From sequence record OR538032.1: 64,000 bases of DNA; one strand, 5' to 3'. Positions 2,347 through 27,641 of this stretch are shown here, piece by piece. The notes beneath the pieces were generated by a model. It saw only the letters and a program-made list of their open reading frames with translations, searched no databases and was not told the origin of the DNA. The translations under genes and the position numbers were made by a program. How positions within the stretch are numbered: position 1 is the stretch's first letter; each line of letters begins with the position of its first letter.

Positions 2347-3465
2347 ATGAAAAATCTAAAATCTTTTATGGAAGAACTTCAATCATTGAACGAAGTCTTC
2401 ATTCGTGGCGGTCGACCACGAAACGGGTCTAAGGTTCTTGCGAACGGCAAGAACATTTGGGTATGGAATAGCGATAGAGAGTTCGAACGCCTAGCGCCAT
2501 TTATCAATCGCGAACTCGGAACCGACTTTGAAGAAGAGTACGATCTAGACTCTTGGTACGAAGAGGGCGCACAAGCGGTATACGCGACGATTGAAAACGG
2601 CAAGCTAGATATGCAAGGGCAATCATCTTATCGCCCGTCTGTAGCGTCTGACACGCTTCGCAAGACTATTAAAGCCCTTAACCTGAACGGCGTGACTCGT
2701 CGAACGCAATCATTTAACCCTGATTACGATGAAGTTGAGCACGATTTCGAGACCGACCGTCGAGAATTCAACAAGAAACTGTCTCAGAAGACGTTCTATC
2801 ACGGTACATCGACAACGTTCATCGAATCAATGTTGAAATTTGGTCTGAAACCGAATCCGAATGAAACTCAATTCGATAATATTGAACATGCTGATAAAGT
2901 CTTTATTACAACAGAACTTGACAAAGCAATGTTCCACGCGACACACTCAGCGAACCGAAACAACTCGTTCCCTGTGATTATCGAGCTACGCATTCCAGAC
3001 GAAAGCAAGCTTGTATCTGACTATGACGTTGTAATTGATGTTCTGGGCGCTAATTCAGAAGAAGCATCCGAGCTTGGGTATGCTGACATCTTCTATCAAA
3101 TGCCACATTCGCGTGGTGACGGTACGAAGTATCACCGAGACGACATCGAAAGTCGATTTGGTAAACGTCTAGGCGGATTGAGTACTCGCATCGGTATCTT
3201 CGGGTACAAAGGTCGAATCCCTGCAAGTCATTTCAATTTCATCTACGCTGACGGTGACGTGATCGAAGAGTCAATGCCAGAAATGTATTGGGAAATGGAC
3301 GGCGAATTCGACATGGCAGAAATGCGTACTGAATCAGTCAACCATCGTTCGTTCGACTACTGGGATCAATTCAAACCCACTAAATTCATTGCTCACTTCG
3401 AAGAACTTTGGGATGATCTCAAAGATGAATACGAAGACGAGGAAGAAGACGAAGATTGGGACTAA
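2347..3465 (+). CDS. ADP-ribosyltransferase-fold (Tpt1/PARP-like) protein with capsid-targeting-like N-terminus
   Basis: FYHGTS...KFGLKP, VFITT...A, PVIIELRIP motifs; N-terminus MKNLKSFMEELQSLNE; acidic tail. Confidence 0.6.
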   Translation: MKNLKSFMEELQSLNEVFIRGGRPRNGSKVLANGKNIWVWNSDREFERLAPFINRELGTDFEEEYDLDSWYEEGAQAVYATIENGKLDMQGQSSYRPSVASDTLRKTIKALNLNGVTRRTQSFNPDYDEVEHDFETDRREFNKKLSQKTFYHGTSTTFIESMLKFGLKPNPNETQFDNIEHADKVFITTELDKAMFHATHSANRNNSFPVIIELRIPDESKLVSDYDVVIDVLGANSEEASELGYADIFYQMPHSRGDGTKYHRDDIESRFGKRLGGLSTRIGIFGYKGRIPASHFNFIYADGDVIEESMPEMYWEMDGEFDMAEMRTESVNHRSFDYWDQFKPTKFIAHFEELWDDLKDEYEDEEEDEDWD

Positions 3466-10643: not shown

Positions 10644-13600
10644 TAACTTAGTAGTGCTTCTAGTCTAGCGATTCGTTCTTCAAGAGCTTCGCGTTTGCGC
10701 TTCTCTTCTTTAATACCCTCAATCAATAGACCAACCATGTTTCCATATGCAACTGCATAGTGACCGTCAGCATCGCCACCTGATTCAACAACAGCTTCTG
10801 GTAGAACTTCAAGAACTTCTTGAGCAATCACACCAGTTTGTCGTGGACATTCAACGTCTGTACGATCATATGTATAACCGTTCAGGCGGTCAATCTTCTC
10901 AAGCGGATTTGTGATTCGCTCAACGTTAGTCTTGACTCGCGCATCCGAGTATGCTGTAATATTACCAGCAGATTGAATGCTTTGGTAGTAGTAGAAACCA
11001 CTCGTCGCATCAGTTGAGTTATGAATCCATGATGTATTACGAGCACCGAAATGCCATGTCTTGCCGTTGTCAGAACGGAAAACCCAGCTTCCTTCGTTTG
11101 CCGAGTTTTGCATATAACGTGTCGTATCGCCACCCAATGCAATGACGTTCTTAACCATCAGGTTACCACCAGTCGTCAACGACATTGCACCATCAGTTGC
11201 TGCGTCACCCTCATCACGCCACAAGAATCCACGATCCGTATCGTTGTTCATTGTGAACGTCATTGCGTAGTCATTCAACCAACCAAAGGATTGTGCGCTT
11301 GCCATGCCGATTGTATATGAACCACTAGACCACACTCGAATCTTATCATAAGAAGAAACACCAGTTGAGATCAATGTCCCATTGACTGTGAAGCTCCCAT
11401 CAGAATGAGTATGATTATGTGAATCATCAGCAACCGCAACAGATAATGTAACGTTTGCACTACCGTCGATTGAAGCTGAACCACTTACATCACCATTCAG
11501 TGTCAGAGTACGAGCAGTAGTCCATTTATCAGCATTCGGGTGATAGTCATCCATGAAAATTCGCTGCGTACTTTCCCACGATGTCGAAAGACCACGTCGG
11601 AAATACAGTTCATTATCAGAAAGAGTATTACTACCACTTATCAATTGCCATACTTGATACGCATCACTCCAACCTTTAACAGTCAACGCAGAGTACCAAC
11701 TTGGAAGCCCACTCGGTCTGTCTAAGTTCGTGAATTGTGCCGATACTGTGCGATCCGGCAAATCATTCGGGACGACTGACGCTGCTCTAGTGTCTTGAAT
11801 TGAAATCGAATTATGTGTGTGCGAATCATTGATAACAGTAGCAACTAAAGTTACGTCCGAACTACCATTAATCGAAACCGAACCTGATAGATCCCCTGAT
11901 AGTGCCAATGTACGAGCATTAGCCCATGTCGTCGCTGTACTTGCATTACCACTCAATGCCCCGATGAATGTCGGTGCTGTGATATTGACAGTCGATGTAA
12001 TTGAAGTACTCTTAACTGAAAATTGTTTATTGTCAGCTAGTATACCACCGACGCCAAGAACAACCTCACCTGCCGCATTTGAGTTGTGCAAATACACCGC
12101 ACTGCGGTTACCAATCAAGCCAAATTTATCAACCTTAACCGTTTCAGATGCAGGAGCAGTATTACCAACAGAGTCAGTGATGAACAATGATGAACTCATC
12201 GTATCACCAGTTTTCTGCACGTAGCCACCACCCGCAATAGGCGCGAATCTTGCGTCGGCTTCAGTCTCGGTGTAGTAACGACCATCGTGCGTATGTGAGT
12301 CATTAGCAACCACAACAGACAAAGTAACGTTTGAGCTACCGTCGATTGAAGCTGAACCGCTCACGTCGCCATTCAATGTCAACGTTCTTGCAGTTGTCCA
12401 CTTATCAGCATTCGGGTGATATTCATCATCGAAAATCTTCATCCACGCTGAACTAACACCAGACTCTCGACGCTTCCACCATAGGCGATTACTATTCTGA
12501 CCCATTGCAAGAGTCATTGCATAACCGTTACCGTTGTTGTGCTCAGTATGAACGCCCCACATCCAACCAGTCTCTTCAGCAGGCGTACCAGTTATCGAAC
12601 TATTAACATCAATGAAGCCGCTTCGCTGATAATCATCAATGTCACCAGACGCCAATTGCATCGAGCCGATTTTACCCGCAGATGTCCCACCGAAGCCGTA
12701 AACAACGTTACTAGACTGAGCTTGAGTAGTAGGCACGTTCAAGTAACCAGTCATCGTATCGCCAGTCGCGTTTACGAAACGAGCATCAGATTCTGCTTCG
12801 GTGTAGTAACGACCATCGTGAGTATGAGAGTCGTCAGCAACTGTAACTGCGAGTGAAATATTCGAGCTACCATCAAACGAAACTGATCCACTAACATCAC
12901 CAGATAACGTTAACGTTCTTGCAGTTGTCCACTTATCGGCTTCTGGGTGATAGTCAGTATGGTACATGTAAACCCAGTCTTCCCACACGTCTGCGTATCT
13001 CGTACGAAGTGCAATTGTACCTGAGTTACCGCTTATACCATATGGATAAGCTACTTGAGTCGCGTTAGTAGTCGATCCATATGTCATTGTCTGAGCATAC
13101 CAGTAACCAGTAAACCCAACAGGTCGATTTAGACCTTGTGACAACTTGTTGTAAAATCCACCACGATAAAGAGTATCCCAGTCCACTGTAGTATCAACAC
13201 CCGATAGAGTACGCCCCGTAGCGATATACTCTGGGTTACTCGCGCTCAGACCGACTTCAGCGTATGTCGTATGATTCGGGACAACTGTACTAATCGTGAC
13301 GTTTGAACTACCATCAATTGAAACTGAACCAGTTACTTCGCCCGATAGAGTAAGCGTTCTTGCAGTCGTCCATTTATCGGCATTTGGGTGATAGTTGTCT
13401 GCAAAAATTCGCTGCGTTGTGTTTAGATACCCAATACCGTTGATAACAACGTTGTTGTTTGATCTAGAACCGTACATGACAACCGATTCAGAATTCGATT
13501 CACGTCTGATAATCTGCCATTGATTGACATCACCATCATAGTGATAACGCACACCGTGATTTCCGTTGTCTTCCGTTAGATATAGACTTGCATCGGTGTT

Positions 13601-14482: not shown

Positions 14483-15919
14483 TTAAAAGCTGTAGCGATC
14501 AACGCCTACAGTTTTCAGCATGATCTTGACTGGCTCAAGCTCACCACCTAACAGTGAAGTCAGGATAGATGGGCTACAACCCGATACCAGTGCAGTACCC
14601 GCTTCGCCAGCTTTAACCGGAACGTTGCCAAGACGACCACGAATGTTCCAGAAGACTAGTTGTGGCATTTCATAGCCAGCACGTGCGTACATAGCTTTGA
14701 TTGCGTCGAAGTTTGCACGTTCGCCGCGACCGTACCAGCCACCACCAGTATTTGCTTGGTCGAATTCCATGTCGCTCATGATAAGCAACTTAGTTGGCAT
14801 TTCTTCTTGTGAAAGATTTGCACGTTTTGCACGTTCTAACAGAACGTTGAAGCACTTACCGATGTTTGTGCTCATGTCTTCGCCTGAGCGATTCATGTTG
14901 TCAAGACGCTCTTTTAGTGAGCTACCGCGCAACTGGTGGAAGTGCGGATCGCTTGAGAACGAAATGAACTGATCTTTGAAGATGCCTTCATTGCGTTCAG
15001 CAACATAGATGCCAAGAGACATTGCAACTTGCTTACAAGTCACACCCGAACGATCTGTACCTGCGTTGATTGGCGTGCTCATAGAGCCAGATACGTCAAC
15101 AACAGGGATGATGCGCTCATCAGAGCCTTCCATGTAGTTCGGCAGAGCTTTCCATTGCTCGTTCGCTACAGACGCATTGCCATGACTAACGCTCTTAACG
15201 ACATCATATGGGAACAATGCACCAGCGTTGATCTTCGCTTCACCTTTTTGAAGTGACTCGATGTAGCTTGTGTAACGAGCAGAAGCGTTACGACCGAATG
15301 CTTGTTGATAACGAGCAGACGCTACAGATGGCAACTTACCAAAGTCGATTGCATCCCATTCTTGAGCACACATCTTCTGTTCAACAGTGTCAGACAAAAG
15401 TGCTAGAATCTTACGCCACTGCTTCGCAGTTACACCAAGAGACTTGATTGTGCGCTTGAACACATGACCGTTTTTGCTGTTTTCACGTGGGAACCACTTA
15501 GCAGCAAGACCGTTCTTGTCGTTTACAATCGCGTTTGACCACAATGTGATCGCGTCTTTCTCAAGACTTGTACCGAACGCAGAAATCAAGTCGTCGAAAC
15601 GACCTAGTTCTGGAATTTTCGACATTACAGCACGAGCTACGTCAGGCTGCTCATTACAAAGTTTAGTGAATAGAGTACGGAAAGTACCACGTTCACCCGC
15701 ACCACCGCGAACATCACGAGACCATAAAAGAATGCGTGTCGCTAGTTCGGGGTTTTCTGCAAACGCACGACCGAACAGTGTTTTAGACTGATCGTTACCA
15801 CGCATAGCAGCAATACCGAAGAACAAGTTTAGACACTCGTTACCTGAAGTGCTGTGAGTAACTGCACCGTTTGCTGTACGTGAATCGTTTGATTGCATAG
15901 CGTTCATAAATGCTGACAT
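14483..15919 (-). CDS. DUF2828 protein (TROVE/Ro60-like helical domain plus vWA)
   Basis: TANGAVTHSTSG, RDVRGGAGER, LAAKWFPRE; vWA MIDAS DVSGS, SDMEFD, VFWNI. Confidence 0.85.
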   Translation of the reverse strand: MSAFMNAMQSNDSRTANGAVTHSTSGNECLNLFFGIAAMRGNDQSKTLFGRAFAENPELATRILLWSRDVRGGAGERGTFRTLFTKLCNEQPDVARAVMSKIPELGRFDDLISAFGTSLEKDAITLWSNAIVNDKNGLAAKWFPRENSKNGHVFKRTIKSLGVTAKQWRKILALLSDTVEQKMCAQEWDAIDFGKLPSVASARYQQAFGRNASARYTSYIESLQKGEAKINAGALFPYDVVKSVSHGNASVANEQWKALPNYMEGSDERIIPVVDVSGSMSTPINAGTDRSGVTCKQVAMSLGIYVAERNEGIFKDQFISFSSDPHFHQLRGSSLKERLDNMNRSGEDMSTNIGKCFNVLLERAKRANLSQEEMPTKLLIMSDMEFDQANTGGGWYGRGERANFDAIKAMYARAGYEMPQLVFWNIRGRLGNVPVKAGEAGTALVSGCSPSILTSLLGGELEPVKIMLKTVGVDRYSF

Positions 15920-15967
15920 TGTTTATTCCTCATATTAAATTGCTGTAAAATGTCGTTTTGATGTGAT

Positions 15968-15996
15968 GATTATACACGGATTTGAACCCGTGTAAA
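15968..15996 (-). promoter_or_regulatory. T4-type early promoter for the DUF2828 gene
   Basis: GTTTAC-N17-TATAAT with TG and upstream A-tract. Confidence 0.8.
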
Positions 15997-16657: not shown

Positions 16658-17024
16658 CAATATATTCCTTAATCGGCTTAGAAAAGTGACGAATACAAGA
16701 ACTGTCAAGTCGTTTACGACCATCACCATCTATGTCTGGTAGCGTGTAATCGTCATTAAACGGCTGACCGCTTTCTTTCGCAATCTCATAGGAATCGGCT
16801 CGATTGAAGTATTCACCACAATAGTTGATAAAACCTTGACCGCGATCACCGAGTTCGTTTCGATGTTCATATGTACAACCTAGTTCTTTCAATAACTTAA
16901 AGACTGATTGCATGTTTCGACCGAAATGGCAGCTATCAGCAACAACAATGTCTCGCTGTTCGCCGTTCGGTAGCGTTACTCGAATTGCATTAGCAGCAGA
17001 CGATATTACATTGACGTGCGACAT
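16650..17024 (-). CDS. conserved phage hypothetical protein
   Basis: GFINYCGEYFNRADSYEIA motif. Confidence 0.7.
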   Translation of the reverse strand: MSHVNVISSAANAIRVTLPNGEQRDIVVADSCHFGRNMQSVFKLLKELGCTYEHRNELGDRGQGFINYCGEYFNRADSYEIAKESGQPFNDDYTLPDIDGDGRKRLDSSCIRHFSKPIKEYIDG

Positions 17025-17362
17025 GTATCGTACCTCATAAAAATTGAACCAACGCGCTTATACTGACCAGAGTGAGAAAGCAACAGAGCCATTTTACTAT
17101 GACCAACAGGATTGCTTGTCACTAGAACAACAGTGCGCGGAAAATTACGATGATCAATCGCATGAGAGAGAATATCGTATCCCTCTCTACCAACATCATC
17201 ACCTAGATCGTTATCCATGAATAGCGTGATGTCAGTTAGATTTGTGTGCTTGACGAAATTCATACCGTCTTCGAATGTTCGAAGTACGAGTTTTTCATCA
17301 TCACGTACGTAATCTGACGTGAACTTATTAATATCACGCAGATCATCAATCATAACGTACAT
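17006..17362 (-). CDS. cyclic-phosphate-processing receiver-like domain protein
   Basis: MIDDLR, LFMDNDLGD, EGYDIL, VTSNPVG. Confidence 0.7.
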   Translation of the reverse strand: MYVMIDDLRDINKFTSDYVRDDEKLVLRTFEDGMNFVKHTNLTDITLFMDNDLGDDVGREGYDILSHAIDHRNFPRTVVLVTSNPVGHSKMALLLSHSGQYKRVGSIFMRYDTCRTSM

Positions 17363-18612: not shown

Positions 18613-18990
18613 TCATGAGAAAATGTGTTTTCGGCTCAACTGCACATCAAATTCATTTTCGAAGCGACAGCGTTCAGTCCCGTAAAGTACATCATCAAGC
18701 GTGAATCGTTTTCGCTTTCGTGTGTGAAGGTTCATATAACGCTCTAGAGCAGTGTCTGAGTCGAATTCAATACGTTCACAACGTCTTTGTTCGGATGTCT
18801 GTGAATAATCGCTTACAGTGCGATACAGAAACAATCCGCGTACCACTACTGCGTTAAGTGTATTTGAACTTTTGATTGTCACGCCGTCAATATTTTCATA
18901 ACGACTCAAGGTAAAGATTATCTCTGAGTCTGGCATTTCAGCGACGCGCTTCATTTTGGATATTGATGTTCGTTTGTTTGATTTGTACAT
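18613..18990 (-). CDS. hypothetical protein
   Basis: GAGG RBS before ATG 18990; promoter TTTATA-N17-TACAGT upstream. Confidence 0.65.
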   Translation of the reverse strand: MYKSNKRTSISKMKRVAEMPDSEIIFTLSRYENIDGVTIKSSNTLNAVVVRGLFLYRTVSDYSQTSEQRRCERIEFDSDTALERYMNLHTRKRKRFTLDDVLYGTERCRFENEFDVQLSRKHIFS

Positions 18991-19038
18991 AGTTATCACC
19001 TCATAATGACTGTACATGATTTATCATGCGCTATAAAC

Positions 19039-19062
19039 AAAAAAACCTGCTCAAGGCAGGTT
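19039..19062 (-). terminator. terminator ending the tRNA/ncRNA operon
   Basis: AACCTGCC-TTGA-GCAGG-T7. Confidence 0.75.
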
Positions 19063-19074
19063 CTAATGTGCAAT

Positions 19075-19325
19075 ACACAGACATTCGAGAAGTGTTTTAT
19101 CGTCTTTGCTTAAATCTCAATTGACTATCTCGATGTTTCTCATCGAGAAAATACCCATGATTCGGCATGAGACCTATTTCGTTTTACAGTACGAACACCG
19201 TCTTAATGGTCATTTCCTACCACGAGAATGCGACAGGCTCACGTCATCACTGAGAAAGCAGCTAGTGCGCCTCATTACTATTAAAGTTTGCTTCTTTGAT
19301 TAGTAATATTGCTGTACAATGTCTT
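19075..19325 (-). ncRNA. about 250-nt structured ncRNA carrying the CWGCA motif (paralog 1)
   Basis: terminal stem AGACATT/AATGTCT; 3' block homologous to 21350-21566. Confidence 0.7.
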
Positions 19326-19335
19326 ATTGCGAATT

Positions 19336-19424
19336 TGGCGGAGATACTGGGAATCGAACCCAGAGAACGCTATTAACGTCCGACACCTTAGCAGGGTGCT
19401 GTCATACCTTTAGACCATATCTCC
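19336..19424 (-). tRNA. tRNA-Ser(GCT)
   Basis: cloverleaf, long variable arm, encoded CCA. Confidence 0.9.
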
Positions 19425-19429
19425 GTAGA

Positions 19430-19609
19430 TCATTTCTTACCACGCTCTGCTTTGCTAATCTCGACAGCAGCGATTTGCGCGTTGGCTTCTTTCTCAGTGT
19501 CATGAGTACCAAGTACTCGACCTTTAGATGAAAGAGCAACCCATTTGTCGCCACGCTTCTCGACTTTCTCAACAAGCTTGTGGTATTCATCAAACGTTTT
19601 AAGTTTCAT
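19430..19609 (-). CDS. 59-aa late protein MKLKTFDEYHKLVE..., putative internal head protein
   Basis: perfect TATAAATA at 19635-19642, GAGGGA RBS; translated by hand. Confidence 0.75.
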   Translation of the reverse strand: MKLKTFDEYHKLVEKVEKRGDKWVALSSKGRVLGTHDTEKEANAQIAAVEISKAERGKK

Positions 19610-19865
19610 TTGTCATCCCTCAGTTAGTTTATTGTATTTATAACTGAACGACTTTTAAACAGTGGCATGCTGCTCTCATGCTCAGACACATATTTGCTCT
19701 TATTGCAGGCGTGTGCCACGCGCAGCGCAGATCCCTTTTGATAATTTAATGACCAGCGGGACTCTTAGCAGGTCTTACACATAGCCTTTCAGCTATATCT
19801 TCTTTTAAGACCATAGTGTCGTACGGTCTAATCACTCTCTTTCGATTCGCGTTGCTAAGTGAATT

Positions 19866-19942
19866 TGGTGCCCAACCCGAGATTCGAACTCGGATCATCT
19901 AGTGTTTGAAACTAGCGCCTCTGCCAATTGGACTAGTTGGGC
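19866..19942 (-). tRNA. tRNA-Leu(CAA), short variable arm
   Basis: cloverleaf, CCA. Confidence 0.9.
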
Positions 19943-20057
19943 TTGAATGAGCTGCCGCAACTCTTTAATCCCTAACGCCTGTCAGCTTTCGCCCGGCTGA
20001 GACCGTTTTCAACGGCGGTAGTCTAGCTTCGTGTAGAACGCGGCTTATGCTAGAGTT

Positions 20058-20134
20058 TGGTACGCACGGGCGGATTCGAACCGCCATCCCTGAGATTTTA
20101 AGCCTCATGCCTCTGCCAATTGGACCACGTGCGC
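20058..20134 (-). tRNA. tRNA-Leu(TAA), short variable arm
   Basis: cloverleaf, CCA. Confidence 0.9.
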
Positions 20135-20136
20135 AG

Positions 20137-20210
20137 TGGAGCCCGAACAGAGAATCGAACTCTGACCGCGGGATTTGCAATCCCTCATACTTCCATTATA
20201 CGATTCGGGC
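20137..20210 (-). tRNA. tRNA-Cys(GCA)
   Basis: cloverleaf, U73, CCA. Confidence 0.9.
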
Positions 20211-20313
20211 AATTTGTTAGTGCATTGCATGGACTACTGGCGATCTTAATGGGTATCTCAAGCATTCAGAATTCCCATGCGCTACTACAATGCTTTTTTC
20301 GCTAAATGCACTT

Positions 20314-20390
20314 TGGGGTGACAGACGGGGATCGAACCCGCATCTTCCGGAATCACAACCCGGGGGTATTTCCACTTCACCCACTGCCAC
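20314..20390 (-). tRNA. tRNA-His(GTG)
   Basis: cloverleaf, C73, CCA. Confidence 0.9.
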
Positions 20391-20444
20391 ACCAAAGTAC
20401 ACTTTGGGATGTTTACGACATCAAACGAATGCGCTCCCTGTGCA

Positions 20445-20684
20445 TTAATCAGTTTTCTTTAAGTAGATACTATCAGGCGATAGCTCTCTCGTAAACATAT
20501 TTTTGAAATAAATTTCGATGTCATCAGAAGTTGTTGAAGACTCAATTTCAAGAGCACGTTCTAAAATCTTACCGCGTTTATAACCAGCGCGCCAACAGTC
20601 AAACATAAGTCTGTCCATGCGTTTCAGTTTTTCAATTTGGTTTTGATTTACGTATTCGTGAGTTTCAAGTAATACAGGCGTCAT
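20445..20684 (-). CDS. hypothetical protein in tRNA cluster
   Basis: 79-aa ORF filling the inter-tRNA gap. Confidence 0.6.
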   Translation of the reverse strand: MTPVLLETHEYVNQNQIEKLKRMDRLMFDCWRAGYKRGKILERALEIESSTTSDDIEIYFKNMFTRELSPDSIYLKKTD

Positions 20685-20707
20685 AATTTATTTCTCATCA
20701 TAAAGAA

Positions 20708-20781
20708 TGGTAGTCCCTAGTGGAATCGAGCCACTTCTTTCTCTGTGTAAAAGAGACGTACTGCCATTATACTAAGGGACC
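20708..20781 (-). tRNA. tRNA-Val(TAC)
   Basis: cloverleaf; C in place of T54. Confidence 0.85.
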
Positions 20782-20786
20782 AAAAT

Positions 20787-20860
20787 TGGAGCGGGTACAC
20801 GGACTCGAACCGAGACGAACGACTTGGAAGGACGTCATGCTACCATTACATCATACCCGC
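20787..20860 (-). tRNA. tRNA-Gly(TCC)
   Basis: cloverleaf, U73, CCA. Confidence 0.9.
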
Positions 20861-21047
20861 ATTGTTAATCTGAAGCGTCGAACAAATCACGTATTGCACG
20901 CAGATTCGTAAGCTCTACAGTAAGTGTTCTTATAAAGAACGGGTTGGTCTCTTTCGCGAGACGATTTTCAACACAGCGAATCTTATCGCGTATGTTGCCC
21001 TTGCTTAGTGTAAAGTAGTCATGCTTCTTATCCTCTTTGCTTGAATT

Positions 21048-21123
21048 TGGTGGAGACACCGATACTCGAAATCGGATCTAATGGCTTATGAGACCATTGC
21101 TCTACCACTTGAGCTACATCTCC
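21048..21123 (-). tRNA. tRNA-Met(CAT), elongator type
   Basis: cloverleaf, CCA. Confidence 0.85.
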
Positions 21124-21134
21124 AAAATCAGTAA

Positions 21135-21348
21135 TTAACTCATTTAATCGCACACGGGCTGACACCATATATTCATGGTCTGAGCGAGGAACCACATAGT
21201 GGGTACTGTCACCTCATCTTAGTTTTGATTGTTTTACATGACGATAACTAGAAACGTTCATAATAATGCCACGCGATACTTCCTGTATCACGGCTAACTG
21301 AGTTAGCAAACTTGCCTTGCGGCTGTAGTGTCGTTTCCGACGAATTAA
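21135..21348 (-). ncRNA. about 214-nt structured ncRNA with GNRA hairpins
   Basis: closing stem TTAATTCGT/ATGAGTTAA; GTCG-GAAA-CGAC, GCC-GCAA-GGC and other hairpins. Confidence 0.55.
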
Positions 21349-21349
21349 G

Positions 21350-21566
21350 TACAGACAATACCGAAGTGTTTTTCGTCTTTTGCATTAATCGGAGTTGACT
21401 AGCTTATTGATTCTCAACAAGCAAATATCGTCTGTTTCAGCGACGCGCCTATCTGACTATTTCTAGGCAGAGAGAATCTTTCCTTTCAAGCTGCGCCGAA
21501 GCACTGCCCAGGTTAAGATCATTACCATTTTTAAGTAATTTTCAATTGTTTGCTGTATATTGTCTC
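21350..21566 (-). ncRNA. about 215-nt structured ncRNA carrying the CWGCA motif (paralog 2)
   Basis: terminal stem AGACAATA/TATTGTCT; 3' block homologous to 19075-19325. Confidence 0.7.
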
Positions 21567-21626
21567 TCTACCATACTCATGATATGCCGAAGCAAAGTAT
21601 CATTCGCCGCATGATAGAGCTTAATT

Positions 21627-21702
21627 TGGCACGCCGTATGAGATTCGAACTCATAACCCCATCCTTAGAAGGGACGTGCTCTTCCAATTGAGCTAACAGC
21701 GC
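21627..21702 (-). tRNA. tRNA-Arg(TCT)
   Basis: cloverleaf, CCA. Confidence 0.9.
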
Positions 21703-21778
21703 ATTAAAAGAATTCGATCCATGAGCTATTGCGCAGACGATGGTAGTAAAGAGACTCTGCACTCATGTGATCGAAATT

Positions 21779-21853
21779 TGGTGGACACGCAGGGAGTCGA
21801 ACCCTATCTTCCTCATTGCAAGTGAGGCGCTTTCCCAATTAAGCTAACGGCCC
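21779..21853 (-). tRNA. tRNA-Ala(TGC)
   Basis: G3-U70, anticodon TGC; irregular acceptor stem. Confidence 0.8.
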
Positions 21854-21864
21854 AATGTTCGTTT

Positions 21865-22074
21865 TTACAACTGTGTGATTGAGATATGATCCCAGCCGTA
21901 TAAACCTTCAAGTTCTTCAATAGGCTCACAAACAATGTCAGAAATATATTCAGCAACTTTTGCTTCAATTTCTTCATCAGATAGCTTTTCATCAATTGCA
22001 AAAGCATCTTCATTATTGTTGCCACCGAAATAGCCACCAATGTCATATTCACACCATACTGAAATATAGTTCAT
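21865..22074 (-). CDS. acidic hypothetical protein (69 aa)
   Basis: GAGA RBS before ATG 22074. Confidence 0.6.
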   Translation of the reverse strand: MNYISVWCEYDIGGYFGGNNNEDAFAIDEKLSDEEIEAKVAEYISDIVCEPIEELEGLYGWDHISITQL

Positions 22075-22098
22075 GTTATTCTCACAGTTGTTTGAAAA

Positions 22099-22174
22099 TG
22101 GTGCCCTGACACGGATTTGAACCGCGAACCTGCTCATTACAAGTGAGCTGCACTGCCAATTGTGCTATCAGGGC
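22099..22174 (-). tRNA. tRNA-Thr(TGT)
   Basis: cloverleaf, CCA. Confidence 0.9.
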
Positions 22175-22180
22175 GTTACT

Positions 22181-22293
22181 GAGTGTTATTACTTGCGTCG
22201 TCCAGACCAGAGATACCAACTCTGAAAGGGAATCGAACCCCAAACATTTCTTTTCGTAAGAAGAATATTAGTAATTGTTTGCTGAAAACACTC
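22181..22293 (-). ncRNA. circularly permuted tRNA-like RNA (YrlA/Y-RNA-like architecture)
   Basis: terminal stems with bulged TTCAGCAAACA, internal T-arm GGGG-TTCGATT-CCC, loop-closed acceptor-like stem. Confidence 0.7.
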
Positions 22294-22302
22294 TTCGGTA
22301 TT

Positions 22303-22376
22303 TGGCAGGGGATAACGGATTCGAACCGGTACTGCGTGAGTCAAAGTCACGTATGCTGCCTTTACATCAATCCCCT
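22303..22376 (-). tRNA. tRNA-Gln(TTG)
   Basis: cloverleaf, G73, CCA. Confidence 0.9.
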
Positions 22377-22395
22377 ATTATTCTTAAATTATCTT

Positions 22396-22471
22396 TGGCG
22401 GAACCGACGGGTTTCGAACCCGCTACCTTCTCCGTGACAGGGAGACATGCAACCACTTACACCTCGGCTCC
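22396..22471 (-). tRNA. tRNA-Asp(GTC)
   Basis: cloverleaf, G73, CCA. Confidence 0.9.
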
Positions 22472-22694
22472 CCAAAGACAACTTAATAGTTGCTTTGTGC
22501 TCGTGCAAACCAAACACTAGCTGAACGACTTCTTGATTTCTTAGTTTTACTACACATTCCCTCGCTAAAGGGCATCATCGTTCTTGTTTTTAACAAATGC
22601 TATGAAAGTGAGATCTTGCTATGCAGGAGGTTTCAAATCTCTGCACACAAGCAGACATCGCAACCAACGCTCTCAAACATTGTCATGGTCAAAC

Positions 22695-22769
22695 TGGCGC
22701 TCCGTGTAGGACTCGAACCTACAGCCTTTCGGTTAACAGCCGATTGCTCCACCATTGAGCTAACGAAGC
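22695..22769 (-). tRNA. tRNA-Asn(GTT)
   Basis: cloverleaf, G73, CCA. Confidence 0.9.
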
Positions 22770-22772
22770 GTA

Positions 22773-23150
22773 TTATTTATTCGATGCGTGTTCTTCTCTG
22801 TGGCAATTCGCACATAACATGATGCATTTATCAAGCTCTGGGACAATTCTCTCCCATCGTTTGCAACCGCCACTAGCAATGCCAAAGTCTTTCCCATTCG
22901 GGTCTGTATGATGAAACTCTAATGCTTCAATGCACTTATCATACCCACATCGTTCACAGCAACCACCTTTATATTCAACCGCCCTCAATTTAGTACGGCG
23001 TCTATATGATACCACTGCTTCTTTATTCTTTTGTTTTCTCTCGTCATCTGTTCGAAATTTCAATTTCTTACCGTTGTATAAACCAGCACATCGACGACTA
23101 CAGAATTTATTGTTGTGTGTTTCTGCACCACACTCTAAGCATTTATTCAT
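22773..23150 (-). CDS. HNH endonuclease (homing-endonuclease-like)
   Basis: CLECG...FCSRRC zinc motif; CERCG...EFHH...LCANCHREEH. Confidence 0.85.
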   Translation of the reverse strand: MNKCLECGAETHNNKFCSRRCAGLYNGKKLKFRTDDERKQKNKEAVVSYRRRTKLRAVEYKGGCCERCGYDKCIEALEFHHTDPNGKDFGIASGGCKRWERIVPELDKCIMLCANCHREEHASNK

Positions 23151-23290
23151 CTGAATTACTCAATTAATAGTTAATAAAGTAACCCAAAGGAGAGTATAGC
23201 CCGCCACATTCGTAAGTGAATGACTCTATTACTACTTAGCAATTACATTCAAGCGTTACCAAGAACCATGCCACGTAGCTTTAAATTAAA

Positions 23291-23349
23291 CAGCAATCCT
23301 TTTCTCTTTTTCCAAATAAAAGTTTTGTATTGTTTGCTGAAAGATTGCT
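23291..23349 (-). ncRNA. short hairpin RNA carrying the CWGCA motif
   Basis: AGCAATCTTT/AAGGATTGCT stem, CAGCAAACAAT bulge. Confidence 0.55.
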
Positions 23350-23355
23350 TAATTC

Positions 23356-23429
23356 TGGCAGGGACATAGAGATTCGAACTCTAACGAACGGGTTTGGAAT
23401 CCGTCATGCTGCCGTTACATCATGTCCCT
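23356..23429 (-). tRNA. tRNA-Trp(CCA)
   Basis: cloverleaf, G73, CCA. Confidence 0.9.
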
Positions 23430-23435
23430 AAAATT

Positions 23436-23509
23436 TGGTAGCCCCAGACAGACTCGAACTGTCAACGTGCGATTATCGGTCGCGTGTTTTACCGTTAAAC
23501 TATGGAGCT
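23436..23509 (-). tRNA. tRNA-Ile(GAT)
   Basis: cloverleaf; C at position 33. Confidence 0.85.
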
Positions 23510-23573
23510 AAAGTGAGCACATTTCAGTGCTCGTGTTAATCGGTTAAGTGACTAAACTTCCCGGTTAACTAAT

Positions 23574-23672
23574 TGGCGGAAGACTAGGGATTCGAACCCT
23601 AACATCACCTCCCGGTGACCGACGGTTTTCAAGACCGTTGCCGCTACCCAGAATCTTTCGGCTAAGCCTTCC
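23574..23672 (-). tRNA. tRNA-Ser(TGA), enlarged D-loop
   Basis: long variable arm, G73, CCA; 99 nt. Confidence 0.85.
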
Positions 23673-23679
23673 ATTAATT

Positions 23680-23756
23680 TGGTTGCGTGGGGCTGGATTC
23701 GAACCAGCGTTCTCCGGCTTATGAGACCGACGAGATGACCACTTCTCTACCCCGCA
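23680..23756 (-). tRNA. tRNA-Met(CAT), initiator-like
   Basis: TGCGGGG acceptor with bulge, fMet-like D arm, CAT anticodon. Confidence 0.75.
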
Positions 23757-23764
23757 ATTATTCA

Positions 23765-23853
23765 ACAGCTTGCGTTCTTTGGTCTGTTTATCGCTGTCTG
23801 AACTGAGTTCGCCGAGCGATCAATAGATTAAGTTAAATTGCAGTATGCAAGCT
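23765..23853 (-). ncRNA. about 87-nt RNA carrying the CWGCA motif
   Basis: AGCTTGC/GCAAGCT stem followed by ATACTGCAA; inner ATCGCT/AGCGAT stem. Confidence 0.6.
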
Positions 23854-23858
23854 AAATT

Positions 23859-23944
23859 TGGTGGAGCGTAGAGGAATCGAACCTCTCTTCCCATTACGGG
23901 ACACGGATTTACAGTCCGCTGCGCCACCTTGGCGCATACGCTCC
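23859..23944 (-). tRNA. tRNA-Tyr(GTA)
   Basis: long variable arm, CCA. Confidence 0.9.
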
Positions 23945-23950
23945 GGAATT

Positions 23951-24024
23951 TGGTACTCGATACGGGAGTCGAACCCGTCCTACTTCCTTGAAAGGGAAGT
24001 GACCTACCGATAGTCGAATCGAGC
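23951..24024 (-). tRNA. tRNA-Glu(TTC)
   Basis: cloverleaf, CCA. Confidence 0.9.
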
Positions 24025-24087
24025 ATTAAATTGTATATTGATTTGCAAGCTAATCAACTCGCAAAGCGATACACAATGTATCTAATT

Positions 24088-24164
24088 TGGTACGCCGCCC
24101 TGGACTCGAACCAGACACCTGAGAGTTAAAAGCTCCCTGCTCTTCCATGATGAGCTACCGACGC
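24088..24164 (-). tRNA. tRNA-Lys(TTT)
   Basis: cloverleaf, CCA. Confidence 0.9.
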
Positions 24165-24175
24165 ATTATAAAATC

Positions 24176-24250
24176 TGGTGGGTCGCAAGAGATTCGAACT
24201 CTCACCGTTCTGGTTAAAAGCCAGATGTACTACCGTTATACGAACGACCC
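24176..24250 (-). tRNA. tRNA-Lys(TTT), second divergent copy
   Basis: cloverleaf, CCA. Confidence 0.9.
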
Positions 24251-24256
24251 AGAATG

Positions 24257-24331
24257 TGGTGCACCCCCTCGGAATCGAACCGAGCACTGCGGGACTTCAA
24301 TCCGCCGCTTTTCCTGATAAGCTAAGGGTGC
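24257..24331 (-). tRNA. tRNA-Phe(GAA)
   Basis: cloverleaf, CCA. Confidence 0.9.
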
Positions 24332-24341
24332 ATGGTACGCA

Positions 24342-24418
24342 TGGTACGCATGAAGAGATTCGAACTCTTAACTTCTGGCTTCTAAGACCAGTGCCTCTGC
24401 CAATTGGGCTACATGCGC
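24342..24418 (-). tRNA. tRNA-Leu(TAG), short variable arm
   Basis: cloverleaf, CCA. Confidence 0.9.
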
Positions 24419-24454
24419 ATTATTCGTTTTTGAACGTTACTTCGTTCTTCTTCA

Positions 24455-24650
24455 TTGTACATGATGTTTATATCGTTGTAAACATCGTTTTTGAAAAATT
24501 TTCATTCAGTTTTGAATGAGATTTCGCTTTTCTCTATTGTACATGATGTTTTCGTCATTGTAAACATCTTTCTGAATTTATTTTGAAGAACTTAACGTTT
24601 TCATTTTTCTATGTGTTAATCTTAACACTCGCTCAAGACATCTTAAACAC
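24455..24650 (-). promoter_or_regulatory. three tandem early promoters driving the downstream tRNA block
   Basis: two near-duplicate TTTACA-N17-TACAAT and one TTTAAG-N17-TAAGAT. Confidence 0.7.
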
Positions 24651-24728
24651 TAATTTGTGAAAAAGTTCGTTAAATTCTATCATCACGACAGTACTTAACG
24701 AGATACGGTCCTAAGCGTATCATATCAA

Positions 24729-24856
24729 TTCAGAATGGTGAGACTTGAACTCACTTCGAGTAATAGCGTAAACTAACAGTTGTTGCCAGAGGCTATCAAT
24801 TATTCTCTACCGAGTATGTTGCAACTCTGCATTTCCCCATTTCTAGGCATTCTGAA
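24729..24856 (-). ncRNA. 128-nt RNA with tRNA-like acceptor and T-arm and expanded interior
   Basis: TTCAGAATG/CATTCTGAA stem; GTGAG-TTCAAGT-CTCAC; no CCA. Confidence 0.6.
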
Positions 24857-24859
24857 ATA

Positions 24860-24935
24860 TGGCACCCAATACAAGATTCGAACTTGTAACCTTCGCCTTC
24901 GTAGGGCGCTGCTCTTCCAATTGAGCTAATCGGGC
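24860..24935 (-). tRNA. tRNA-Arg(ACG)
   Basis: cloverleaf, CCA. Confidence 0.9.
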
Positions 24936-24943
24936 ATTAAAAC

Positions 24944-25020
24944 TGGTCCGTGACAAGCGATTCGAACGCTTAACTTCTCCGCCCCAAACGGAGTACTCTA
25001 CCAGATTGAGCTAGTCACGG
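24944..25020 (-). tRNA. tRNA-Pro(TGG)
   Basis: C1-G72, G37, CCA. Confidence 0.9.
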
Positions 25021-25029
25021 ATTTTAAAT

Positions 25030-25103
25030 TGGTCGGGACGAAGAGACTCGAACTCTTACCACATGCTCCCAAAGCATGAACGCTGCCTTTACGCCACGTC
25101 CCG
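25030..25103 (-). tRNA. tRNA-Pro(TGG), second divergent copy
   Basis: C1-G72, CCA. Confidence 0.9.
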
Positions 25104-25471
25104 TTTGTTCTTTAACTTTGTTTATCATACTCTGCTTTCAAAGTACGTTAAACAAAATTTTTTGATTTCCTTCGCCCATAAAAAAGGACGCTACGTGCGT
25201 CCTCAAGTATACTTCTATGTTATACTATTGGACTACGTTTGTGGAGACCACTCTTGTTTCGCACACGGATTCGCTAGATACACGAATTCTGAGCGCAGAA
25301 AATCGCTGCGTAAAATCATATCAGAATGTGTATTCGAATGTGTCATGGAAACTCTCTAAACGTTAAAAATAAAAATGTTTTTGTTTGTATAATAGTACTT
25401 ATAACACCAAATTTGACGATTTGCGGTATTTTCGCAGAAAATTGAAAAAAATTCAACTTTCTGCGATTTTC

Positions 25472-25705
25472 TTATCGACCTAGGTGTTTTCGCTTGTTCA
25501 TTTCAACGAGAATTTCATCGTTGTAATGGCGGTTCAGTTCAACATACTTCTTGTGTTGTTCTGAAGTCAACTCGTTAGTGTCATTCAGATGCTTCAAGAA
25601 CCCAAGAGGCTTGCGAAACGACTTGCGATATTCGTTCAGACGCTCGTCCGTTAGATTATGCAGTTGTTTCGGAGTCAGTAACGTTTTATTGATGTCAAAA
25701 CTCAT
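25472..25705 (-). CDS. hypothetical protein
   Basis: GAGG RBS before ATG 25705. Confidence 0.65.
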   Translation of the reverse strand: MSFDINKTLLTPKQLHNLTDERLNEYRKSFRKPLGFLKHLNDTNELTSEQHKKYVELNRHYNDEILVEMNKRKHLGR

Positions 25706-25729
25706 GTTGTACCTCACTTGTTATTAAAA

Positions 25730-25845
25730 TGGTAGTCGGGGCTGGATTCGAACCAGCGACCACGTGCTTAACAGGCAATTGAAGGAGTGCTGGAGCGATA
25801 CTTGTCAGTATCATTCTTCGTGCTCTACCACTGAGCTACCCGACT
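25730..25845 (-). ncRNA. tRNA-Asn(GTT) scaffold with 41-nt motif insertion in the anticodon stem
   Basis: deleting 25778-25818 gives a regular 75-nt cloverleaf with CCA. Confidence 0.8.
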
Positions 25846-25850
25846 ATGAA

Positions 25851-26372
25851 TTATTTAACTTTGAACTTCAAATTACGCCAGTCAAAGTTTCGTTTGTTCT
25901 TTGTGTTGTAGAACGTGCCCCAATCAATAGCAATCGGACAGTTCTTACTACCTACACGAGCGATAAATACATCGTGAGTCTCGCTGTAACGCTCTCTAAG
26001 CTCCTTTAAACGCTTATCGTAGTTAGCGATATACTCAGCACACGCTTTGTTGTAAGCTGCTTTAGAGAAGCGTTCGTTACTCGAAAATACATTACCTAGA
26101 TAAGGTCGAATAACACGAACTCGTTCTTTAGACCAACCCATACTAAAGCTGTTTTCAATCTCACCTGAGATTTCACCAGTCTTCTTACATCTAGCAAGAA
26201 TGACCCAGCAACGTTCACGCCGAAAATCTTTTCGTACATACACGTTAACGTGCTTGTCAATGTACTCTTGATAACGAGCGTTATACTCAGCACGCAGTTT
26301 ATTGCGCACTTCAGGCGACATTGCAGCTCGTTCTTCTTTCGAAAACGCTTGTGCAAATTTCAATGGTTTCAT
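25851..26372 (-). CDS. basic hypothetical protein (173 aa)
   Basis: GAGGA RBS before ATG 26372. Confidence 0.7.
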   Translation of the reverse strand: MKPLKFAQAFSKEERAAMSPEVRNKLRAEYNARYQEYIDKHVNVYVRKDFRRERCWVILARCKKTGEISGEIENSFSMGWSKERVRVIRPYLGNVFSSNERFSKAAYNKACAEYIANYDKRLKELRERYSETHDVFIARVGSKNCPIAIDWGTFYNTKNKRNFDWRNLKFKVK

Positions 26373-26385
26373 TATAATTTCCTCT

Positions 26386-26625
26386 TGGCGCCGCTCGTGT
26401 GAATCGAACACACGTCAAACACAACACCTCGTCCACCCAATTAGAGTTTCGAAGTAAGAGCTAATCAGCATTTCGGAGCAATCGAGCGTTATTTCTACGA
26501 GTGAGCTTTCGACAACTCACACGCACTTTCTACTCGGTCCCAGTGATTCGGTACCAACGCAGGTTGCGAACCTACGTCTGCACTAATGTTGGGAAAACAC
26601 TGCGTATTGTACACCAGTTAGCGGC
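26386..26625 (-). ncRNA. 240-nt RNA with a tmRNA-like tRNA-like domain
   Basis: GCCGCT/AGCGGC acceptor, G73-CCA, GAC-GTGTG-TTCGATT-CACAC, P2-like ACAATAC/GTGTTGT. Confidence 0.7.
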
Positions 26626-26628
26626 ATT

Positions 26629-26859
26629 TTAAAGATAGCTATCAAAGACAGCATCATCAACTTCTTCAATATTGATGTCAGCGTAACATTCGTTCGCAAT
26701 TGCTTGAATCTCACCTATTGAAACTGTACCTGAGTACAAAACAACAGCATCATTCGGAATCACGACATCACACATGTATTTGTTAAACATTGCAGTTCTG
26801 AAATCAGAATCAACAGAGTAACCGTGCAACGACGTGATAACTAGCAATTTATGTGACAT
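26629..26859 (-). CDS. hypothetical protein
   Basis: GAGGA RBS; promoter TTGACA-N17-TAGTAT at 26890-26918. Confidence 0.7.
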   Translation of the reverse strand: MSHKLLVITSLHGYSVDSDFRTAMFNKYMCDVVIPNDAVVLYSGTVSIGEIQAIANECYADINIEEVDDAVFDSYL

Positions 26860-26938
26860 AATGTTTTCCTCGTGTAGTTGATAATGTGTATACTACACGT
26901 TGATGAAACGCATGTCAACAACTTTTTCAAATTATTTT

Positions 26939-27015
26939 TGGTAGCCCCTCTCGGATTCGAACCGAGAACCTGACGATTATGAGTCGTCTGCTACTACCGT
27001 TACAGCTAAGGGGCT
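26939..27015 (-). tRNA. tRNA-Ile2(CAT, lysidine type) or tRNA-Met
   Basis: AGCCCCT acceptor and GACGA-CTCATAA-TCGTC arm resemble ileX. Confidence 0.8.
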
Positions 27016-27395: not shown

Positions 27396-27517
27396 TGGTG
27401 GAGAGTACGGGATTCGAACCACGTGACCAAAAGATTTACCTAGTTAGGGTTTGCAGCATGAATGCTTATCAGAATTCTTTAACATTCTTTTGCTCTACCA
27501 GACTGAGCTAACTCTCC
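27396..27517 (-). ncRNA. tRNA-scaffolded RNA A (motif module in place of anticodon loop)
   Basis: GGAGAGT/ACTCTCC-ACCA, D arm, T arm, about 50-nt insert. Confidence 0.75.
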
Positions 27518-27523
27518 AGAATT

Positions 27524-27641
27524 TGAGGGTGAAGTACAGGACTCGAACCTGCGACCTCCGGCGTGCATAAAATGCAGCATGAAATCTTAACAGACTTCTA
27601 TTGTTTAGACCGGCATTCTAACCAACTGAACTAACTTCACC
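27524..27641 (-). ncRNA. tRNA-Asp-like scaffolded RNA B
   Basis: GTTCAGTTGGTTAGAATGCCGG...CACGCCGGAGGTCGCAGGTTCGAGTCC with insert in the anticodon loop. Confidence 0.75.

Follow-up and report, generated by a model that had tools for sequence, protein, structure and literature searches.

Two long RNAs in the tRNA region of a Vibrio phage share a terminal handle with small RNAs encoded beside genes for Ro60-like proteins

The DNA analyzed here is a 64,000-nucleotide (nt) stretch of sequence record OR538032.1 (the window), and the elements in question are two RNAs, designated RNA A and RNA B, that are encoded on its minus strand within or directly after a tRNA gene cluster. The 2.6-kb region around them matches Vibrio phage PG216 at 100% identity; its identity to KVP40, a Schizotequatrovirus related to T4, is 98%. 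The tRNA cluster (positions 19336 to 27015, minus strand) contains 27 tRNAs according to ARAGORN and 30 according to Rfam. Its last gene is tRNA-Ser (19336), and RNA A (about 249 nt; 19077 to 19325, minus strand) starts 11 nt later and is followed directly on its 3' side by an intrinsic terminator (19042 to 19064, minus strand). In phage F86, a G+C-rich hairpin and a T run likewise come directly after RNA A. RNA B (about 216 nt; 21351 to 21566, minus strand) is a paralog of RNA A and lies inside the cluster. Farther along the same strand, with its start codon 3.2 kb beyond the end of RNA A, is the gene for a Ro60-like protein of 478 amino acids (aa) (14483 to 15919, minus strand), the proposed RNA partner, which carries the Pfam domains DUF2828 and DUF7788 and belongs to phrog_850 ("RNA-binding protein"). 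The KVP40 and phi-pp2 records have no depositor annotation at RNA A or RNA B, and a literature search found no description of KVP40 small RNAs. Part of the 2.6-kb query was also matched in 8 Klebsiella phage genomes at 80 to 90% identity, presumably due to the tRNA genes.

Both RNAs were delimited by their ends, shared blocks, folds, and alignment. RNA A runs from AAGACATTGTACAGCAA at 19325 to AATGTCTGT at 19077, and RNA B runs from GAGACAATATACAGCAA at 21566 to ATTGTCTGT at 21351. At the 5' end of RNA A are AAG (19325 to 19323), the stem strand AGACATT (19324 to 19318), and the motif GTACAGCAA (19317 to 19309); at its 3' end are the stem strand AATGTCT (19085 to 19079) and a trailing GU (19078 to 19077). 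The corresponding parts of RNA B are the 5' stem strand AGACAAT (21565 to 21559), the motif ATACAGCAA (21558 to 21550), the 3' stem strand ATTGTCT (21359 to 21353), and GU (21352 to 21351). Before the trailing GU, the two strands form a terminal helix of 7 bp in each RNA (AGACATT/AATGTCT in A and AGACAAT/ATTGTCT in B). The common 5' start is (A/G)AG-ACAwT-rTA-CAGCAA, and the homologous 3' blocks, about 50 nt in length, close with AwTGTCT-GU. An exact 16-nt 5' block occurs at two sites in the window, those of A and B; the same is true of a 22-nt 3' block, for which 0.12 chance matches are expected and none of 100 shuffled sequences reached two. Pairwise alignment of A with B showed conserved ends and a divergent interior. 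The minimum free energy folds of both contain an ATTACT...GTAAT hairpin and several interior hairpins, with z-scores of -2.0 (A) and -2.8 (B).

RNA A and RNA B are kept in 13 of 13 KVP40-, nt-1-, 6E35-, and F86-type phages examined (the KVP40 group, ValKK3/VH7D, nt-1/CZ01, 1.081.O, 6E35/K566, and F86), at identities down to about 70%. The closing helix of RNA B shows compensatory changes among these phages, reading AGGCAAT/ATTGCCT in F86 and AGATAAT/ATTATCT in 1.081.O. RNAalifold, run on 13 B and 12 A sequences, retained the terminal helix and revealed an additional 4-bp helix, P2, inside the shared 3' block; the interior of RNA B has 15 pairs with compensatory changes, and that of RNA A has fewer. 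The lengths of insertions and deletions in both alignments are not multiples of three, which shows that the regions are noncoding. An alternative is that the regions are small protein genes, decayed tRNAs, or chance repeats. Two open reading frames (ORFs) overlap the RNAs, one of 65 aa (19106 to 19303, plus strand) and one of 45 aa (21248 to 21385, minus strand), and some depositors place a "hypothetical protein" over B. Frame-breaking indels among close relatives, helix covariation, ends conserved in 13 phages, and the lack of any tRNA model match at A or B all speak against such an origin, which we consider extremely improbable. The status of A and B as RNAs derives from conservation, covariation, and context. 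A preliminary description of this DNA had proposed, at these positions, two paralogous noncoding RNAs closed by a terminal helix, with homologous 5' and 3' blocks around different interiors, the first being the last RNA before the terminator. The alignments, the confinement of the blocks to A and B, the compensatory changes in the 7-bp helix, and the terminator at 19064 to 19042 uphold that description.

The shared 3' block forms a module of its own. In RNA A (19079 to 19127, minus strand), it consists of TAGTCAA followed by P2, which pairs GAGA (19118 to 19115) with TCTC (19090 to 19087); in RNA B (21353 to 21401, minus strand), TAGTCAA (21401 to 21395) precedes a P2 helix of CCGA (21392 to 21389) and TCGG (21364 to 21361). 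In a joint alignment of 20 3' modules, P2 was 100% paired, and two of its four pairs were changed on both sides (GC/CG/GU and CG/AU/UA). P2 is stacked on the closing helix, and its A-rich loop of about 26 nt hardly varies, whether between the paralogs or among phages. A possible pseudoknot between an upstream AGUC and a GAC in the P2 loop was left tentative: it has one covarying pair, in one lineage, and at another of its positions 14 of 16 sequences are mismatched. When IMG/VR was scanned with the exact pattern of the A/B 3' module, 21 stretches were found, of which only KVP40 and VH7D carry the remainder of the RNA; the other 19 are without the downstream block and the closing helix. In ValKK3, VH7D, and phi-Grn1 (loci L007, L008, and L012 of our collection), an opposite-strand gene of 1.7 kb with a fibritin-like note lies directly downstream of RNA A, showing that the distance from RNA A to the Ro-like gene is not fixed.

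The ends of A and B recur elsewhere in the window. Together they constitute what we call a handle: an (A)AG start, a 7-bp helix joining the two ends of the RNA, an unpaired (U)UACAGCAA directly 3' of the 5' strand, and a CUGU end. The sequence of the helix is free and differs between RNAs, except that the second pair is always G-C. Handles are present at six or more sites in the window, in at least five RNAs (A, B, C, mini, and E) and one mRNA leader, and the recurrences of the 5' motif are on the same strand and conserved across relatives. Like RNA B, RNAs C, mini, and E are embedded within the tRNA cluster. RNA C (about 118 nt; 22178 to 22295, minus strand) is located between tRNA-Gln and tRNA-Thr and has the handle GAGTGTT/AACACTC with the motif UUUCAGCAA; its body contains a T-arm-like hairpin, GGGGTTCGATTCCC, and a D-arm-like hairpin, CAGAGTTGGTATCTCTG. 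The mini RNA (about 61 nt; 23290 to 23350, minus strand) starts 6 nt after tRNA-Trp and consists of the handle and a short A-rich loop. Its helix covaries among phages (AGCAATC/GATTGCT, AGTAATC/GATTACT, and AGAATGT-type/GCATTCT). RNA E (about 90 nt; 23765 to 23854, minus strand), between tRNA-Tyr and tRNA-Met, has the handle AGCTTGC/GCAAGCT and a variant motif, UACUGCAA (CUGCAA). A window-wide scan for a 7-nt stem, 3 nt, C(A/T)GCAA, and the complementary strand followed by G gave four minus-strand matches, all of them in the tRNA cluster and all starting with AG; shuffled sequence gave a mean of 1.2 matches on both strands combined. A plus-strand "closed" motif match at 32251 to 32459 (one of four) was attributed to chance, as it lies antisense inside a 656-aa ORF. 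We also rejected a reading of TACAGCAA as a promoter, since it is conserved in amoebae as well as in phages whose hosts are unrelated and since promoter-like sites are no commoner than in shuffled sequences. By their ends, then, A and B are long forms of a larger handle family and make up a subfamily of KVP40-type phages, and they are very likely to be genuine members of that family and functional RNAs. The mini RNAs are best read as bare handles and RNA C as a tRNA-mimic form.

The mRNA leader with a handle-like hairpin is that of the Ro-like gene itself (15915 to 15955, minus strand). The hairpin pairs GACATT (15954 to 15949) with AATGTC (15920 to 15915), carries UUACAGCAA at 15948 to 15940 directly after the 5' strand, and scores 13.4 bits with a covariance model of the handle, R1 (described below). 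Its 3' strand, AATGTC, includes the ATG start codon, and the Shine-Dalgarno sequence is enclosed by the hairpin. This arrangement suggests that the Ro-like protein may repress its own translation. Upstream of the hairpin is a sigma70-like promoter, TTTACA-16-TATAAT. A T-arm-like hairpin, ACACGGGTTCAAATCCGTGT (15976 to 15993, minus strand), fills the spacer of this promoter just upstream of the leader handle.

For the Ro-like protein, sequence searches of the PDB were uninformative, and a fold search was therefore needed. An AlphaFold model of the 478-aa protein, made from 32 homologs, had a predicted local distance difference test score of 75.8 and a predicted template modeling (TM) score of 0.70, corresponding to moderate confidence. 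The top seven Foldseek matches covered the full length and were all Ro60/TROVE proteins (E values of 5e-7 to 2e-5; TM scores of 0.49 to 0.59); isolated vWA domains came next. The Ro60 matches comprised phiLo Ro60 (9kop and 9l5y), Xenopus Ro60 (2i91 and 1yvr), and 9nep, and they included a complex of Ro60 with misfolded RNA. According to the model, the 478-aa protein folds like Ro60, as a ring of helical repeats of the TROVE type with a C-terminal vWA domain. The residues of the vWA metal site (DxSxS...T...D), namely, D275, S277, S279, T351, and D383, are invariant in the 32 homologs. Relatives of the protein are found in 710 isolated phage genomes, including phages of Escherichia coli K-12, Salmonella, Listeria, Staphylococcus, and Mycobacterium, and the homologues among the best 120 to 150 matches listed are all phage-like.

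The neighborhoods of these relatives were examined in 80 IMG/VR loci, with the Ro-like gene set to the plus strand. One of these loci is VH7D; the other 79 encode relatives with 46 to 55% identity. A simple scan for the handle gave 150 plus-strand and 50 minus-strand matches, and in most loci it placed an element of 55 to 61 nt just 3' of the Ro-like stop codon. R1 was built from 47 of these post-stop elements. In the 79 loci (1.25 Mb), R1 gave 71 matches at an E value of ≤0.01, every one on the strand of the gene and none on the opposite strand, distributed over 52 loci. Of these matches, 15 start 16 to 24 nt past the stop codon and 38 are no more than 666 nt away from it; 4 are located 9 to 14 nt upstream of the start codon. 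In the alignment based on the covariance model, the helix was 99.5% paired, six of seven pairs were changed on both sides, and the covariation score was 0.844, versus 0.19 for shuffles. R1 was also run on 80 loci from bacterial and archaeal genomes that encode relatives with 34 to 47% identity. Here, 36 matches at an E value of ≤0.1 were found, again all on the gene's strand and often in arrays of three or four. In total, the 159 distant loci yielded 107 R1 matches, and 107 of 107 are on the same strand as the Ro-like gene. Most of the handle relatives are 50 to 70 nt long.

Five loci of isolated phages were opened individually: those of skuden (E. coli K-12), Listeria phage A511, Campylobacter phage CPX, Cronobacter phage S13, and mycobacteriophage Jubie. 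The Ro-like gene adjoins a tRNA cluster in the first four and is near a single tRNA-Tyr gene in Jubie. R1 handle RNAs lie next to the Ro-like gene in four of the five; the S13 locus had no R1 match at an E value of ≤1. Skuden, a Felixounavirus, has three of them, placed among tRNAs directly downstream of the gene. The Jubie protein, 33.6% identical to the window protein, bears the annotation "Ro-like RNA binding protein." Its gene is followed by three tandem RNAs of the form GGAC-nnn-nACAGCAA...nnn-GUCC-AGU, the middle one of which matches the Rfam YrlA model with 39.3 bits. Long forms also occur in other lineages, where the handle is kept and the bodies vary, several of them containing a T-arm and then a D-arm. 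Two long forms of locus L043 match YrlA, one with 38.0 bits (E = 1.5e-6) and the other with 34.8 bits along the full model. The same locus contains, about 6 kb downstream of its Ro-like gene (11770 to 12535, with an identical array in L044), six tandem handle RNAs, both mini forms and tRNA-like long forms, interleaved with tRNAs. In Listeria phage A511 (L197), the Ro-like gene, gp57, has two handle RNAs upstream, which are separated from the tRNAs by a match to ROOL RNA (2507 to 3058; RF03087; 87.5 bits, just below the cut-off of 99.1). In L073 (1652 to 3687), the Ro-like gene match spans 2,036 nt, compared with about 1,430 nt, which suggests an insertion such as an intron, an intein, or a mobile element.

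In a second explanation, the handle is a processing or stability signal: the terminal helix and ACAGCAA would guide a nuclease that excises spacer RNAs from polycistronic tRNA transcripts or would simply protect the RNA ends from exonucleases, leaving A and B as stable by-products or as RNAs whose role is unrelated. This explanation is favored by the fact that every member in the window directly follows a tRNA (with spacers of 6 to 60 nt) or directly precedes one. The Ro-like gene and the RNAs both adjoin tRNA clusters in many phages, so their linkage could be indirect. However, in many IMG/VR loci the element lies 16 to 24 nt after the stop codon of the Ro-like gene or 9 to 14 nt before its start codon, and all 107 R1 matches share the strand of the gene. 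The motif is conserved among phages that infect Vibrio, E. coli, Listeria, Campylobacter, and Mycobacterium, hosts whose processing enzymes differ. We therefore judge a pure processing signal to be unlikely.

RNAs encoded next to Ro60 genes have been described before. Y RNAs mimic tRNAs, and their genes share the strand of Ro60 and lie no more than 4 kb from it (PMC4201824). YrlA RNAs adjoin TROVE genes in 22 phages, again within 4 kb and on the same strand (Chen et al. 2014; PMC4201824), and for one phage Ro60, binding to two Y-like RNAs and to the PNPase of the host was shown (Hu et al. 2025; PMC12135203). Like YrlA/YrlB (RF02553) and Yrl1/Yrl2 of phiLo, the handle RNAs lie near a gene of the Ro60 type, on its strand, and in several paralogs per genome. 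Like bacterial and phage Y RNAs, they have 5' and 3' ends that pair, with a conserved motif left unpaired next to the 5' strand, and they are modular, combining a putative protein-binding stem with a variable effector body; some relatives also share the T-arm/D-arm tRNA mimic that matches the YrlA model. RNA A, at 3.2 kb and on the same strand, is within the 4-kb distance of Y RNAs, as are many of the distant-locus matches, which lie no more than 25 nt from the gene. The end stem with an unpaired motif is likewise present, as a 7-bp covarying helix and UACAGCAA. A phage precedent, phiLo, was demonstrated biochemically (PMC12135203). The systems differ in that the proposed partner protein belongs to the DUF2828/DUF7788 branch, to which the TROVE model of Pfam is blind, and in that the window RNAs are embedded in a tRNA operon and not in an rsr-rtc operon. 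Metazoan Y RNAs (RF00019) have a Ro60 partner, as proposed for the window RNAs, and share a terminal stem and a variable loop with them but show no sequence or model similarity to them; they are transcripts of RNA polymerase III with a bulged Ro-binding helix containing GGUCCGA. Given the YrlA-like bodies and the Y RNA precedents, the family in the window is best interpreted as the counterpart of Y RNAs for Ro-like proteins of the DUF2828 branch. A and B are best read as a new long-bodied variant of the Y-RNA kind, carrying a handle that is not recorded as a family in Rfam. They are thus probably long-form, Y-RNA-like partners of the phage Ro-like protein.

Several observations weigh against this interpretation. 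RNA B is 5.4 kb from the Ro-like gene and so outside the 4-kb rule, and A and B, at 216 to 249 nt, are about twice as long as known Y RNAs (80 to 130 nt). The handle motif, (U)UACAGCAA (ACAGCAA), differs from the Ro-binding motifs of Y RNAs, GNCGAA(N0-1)G, CGAA, and GGUCCGA. A and B have no tRNA-like domain, and Rfam searches of 18900 to 21750 gave no match at either RNA at an E value of ≤10. Whole-window Rfam searches at the gathering threshold returned tRNAs only; weak YrlA matches were dismissed because their spans cover neighboring tRNAs, and the related long forms of other loci, at 35 to 39 bits, are below the YrlA gathering cut-off of 69 bits. R1 finds nothing at A and, at B, only part of the 5' motif without the helix. 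It is unable to bridge the long bodies of these RNAs, and their membership in the family therefore depends on the shared ends as read directly from the sequence. Short-form R1 matches are absent from 27 of the 79 IMG/VR loci. The 3' module was found in KVP40-type phages only, so any role of this module is not generalizable to the family. The Pfam TROVE model does not recognize the 478-aa protein, which hits only DUF2828 and DUF7788, and sequence and profile searches of the PDB returned designed armadillo repeats, with the best TROVE chain at E = 1.7 and only in the metal-site segment. Finally, the association between RNA and protein is a genomic one only. With these points taken into account, we still consider binding of A and B to the Ro-like protein to be likely.

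If the RNAs are Y-RNA-like partners of this protein, a particle of the following kind can be envisaged. The handle would be the docking site for the Ro60-like protein, and the variable body between its strands would provide a second function by recruiting or mimicking other factors. In A and B, this body is made up of a multi-hairpin part and the 3' hairpin with its 26-nt A-rich loop, which is probably a platform for another protein or RNA. The RNAs would be transcribed together with the tRNAs and released by tRNA-processing nucleases, with A closing the unit at the terminator. By analogy with Rsr-Y RNA-PNPase, the rsr-yrlBA-rtcBA repair operon, and the Ro60-Yrl system of the Thermus phage phiLo, which attenuates host PNPase, the particle may monitor, repair, or protect structured RNAs, the phage tRNAs first of all, during infection. 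This physiological role is proposed with somewhat less than even confidence. The bodies could instead be what matters, with A and B serving as trans-acting base-pairing RNAs or as decoys for host anticodon nucleases, RNases, or defense sensors and the Ro-like protein being a stabilizer or irrelevant. A nearly invariant single-stranded loop of 26 nt is typical of a seed or binding surface, and the tRNA-like relatives suggest mimicry. However, such an account leaves unexplained why the same handle is found on many unrelated bodies and why the bare handle, in mini RNAs and leader copies, is the most conserved unit beside the gene. As a full explanation it is improbable, although a small-RNA or decoy role for the bodies is compatible with the RNAs being partners of the Ro-like protein.

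The preliminary description had also raised the question of kinship with T4 stable RNAs C and D (rnaC and rnaD, or species 1 and 2). The niche of A and B in their T4-related phage is the same as that of these small, stable RNAs, namely, the part of a T4-type tRNA cluster farthest from the promoter and ahead of the terminator. The T4 RNAs lack the AAG-stem-ACAGCAA start, the complementary CUGU end, and the 3' block, and R1 found no match in the T4 tRNA locus at an E value of ≤10. Within the 5 kb of that locus, which was the extent of the T4 genome searched, no relative of the Ro-like protein is annotated. These data do not bear out the kinship, to which we give next to no credence.

A different resemblance was found with the Class I RNAs of Dictyostelium. 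Dicty_Class_I_RNA (RF01414) is the only non-tRNA Rfam match at any member of the handle family in the window; the mini RNA, which scores 60 bits with R1, reaches 27.4 bits with the full RF01414 model, and members from L016 and L043 reach 28.2 and 30.8 bits, compared with a gathering cut-off of 41.5 bits. A and B do not match it. The possibility that the RNAs would match a characterized family is thus half realized: the end module resembles known families, and below threshold the mini RNA matches RF01414 and relatives match YrlA, whereas the bodies of A and B resemble neither and have no Rfam match at the E value given above. Class I RNAs are 42 to 65 nt long, with a terminal stem conserved in structure and not in sequence, an 11-nt motif beside its 5' strand, an AAG start, and a CUGU end, and they were concluded to be unique to dictyostelids (Kjellin et al. 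2021; PMC7919456). The Rfam consensus of RF01414 reads GaUcuC-CUUACAGCAA-...-GagAuC-UG. Class I RNAs and the phage handle have in common AAG, a sequence-free terminal stem of 6 to 7 bp with an invariant 5'-most G, CUUACAGCAA directly after the 5' strand, an A-rich variable middle, CUGU, and a total length of about 60 nt. The same end architecture is seen in A (AAG-stem-GUACAGCAA...stem-CUGU) and in B (GAG-stem-AUACAGCAA...stem-CUGU). In length, Class I RNAs are matched by the mini RNA (61 nt) and most relatives but exceeded by A (249 nt) and B (216 nt), which have 150 to 190 nt of extra body beyond the Class I layout. The hosts also differ, being dictyostelids for Class I RNAs versus phages and prokaryotes for handle RNAs. 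The DUSE promoter about 60 nt upstream of Class I RNAs is specific to eukaryotes, whereas the window RNAs sit in a bacterial-type tRNA operon, and the only proven Class I binder is Rnp1A, an RNA recognition motif protein and not a Ro-like protein. A literature search found no link between Class I RNAs and Ro60/TROVE. Judging by the sequence features listed here, it is possible, if doubtful, that the handle (AAG, terminal stem, UUACAGCAA, and CUGU) is the very module that defines Class I RNAs, that Class I RNAs have a DUF2828 protein as partner in the manner of Y RNAs, and that all belong to one ancient ribonucleoprotein (RNP) family. Common descent of the handle and Class I RNAs is offered as a hypothesis.

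Other genes and features of the locus are as follows. An RNaseH-like protein (PF04308; 13908 to 14438, minus strand) is encoded immediately 3' of the Ro-like gene, and this neighbor is conserved in related Vibrio phages. A protein with a cREC_REC (cyclic-phosphate processing receiver) domain (17006 to 17362, minus strand) is encoded between the tRNA cluster and the Ro-like gene. Both families are linked to RNA-repair systems. Three oversized tRNA-model matches of 113 to 119 nt and 50 to 52 bits (25733 to 25845, 27399 to 27517, and 27528 to 27640, minus strand) were not called by ARAGORN, and their KVP40 equivalents are annotated as pseudo-tRNAs; they may be tRNAs with introns or else tRNA-like RNAs. 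Small ORFs of 59 to 90 aa are located among the tRNAs (19430 to 19609, 20445 to 20684, 20865 to 21059, and 21865 to 22137, minus strand) and are labeled hypothetical protein in KVP40.

With this analysis, two conserved and unannotated RNAs of KVP40-type phages, together with more than 100 similar RNAs elsewhere, gain an identity and a candidate partner. A compact motif, a 7-bp helix plus ACAGCAA, predicts RNA partners, none of them in Rfam, for the Ro-like protein in 710 phage isolates. The protein is linked to the tRNA clusters of phages, which suggests a role in surveying, repairing, or protecting tRNAs during infection. The likeness to Class I RNAs would provide a first molecular lead on these abundant RNAs of about 60 nt, which have long been unexplained in Dictyostelium. 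If it reflects common descent or a shared partner, an ancient RNP family would span phages of many bacterial phyla, prokaryotic genomes, and amoebae; horizontal transfer would be a possible route, and A and B would be the largest known members.

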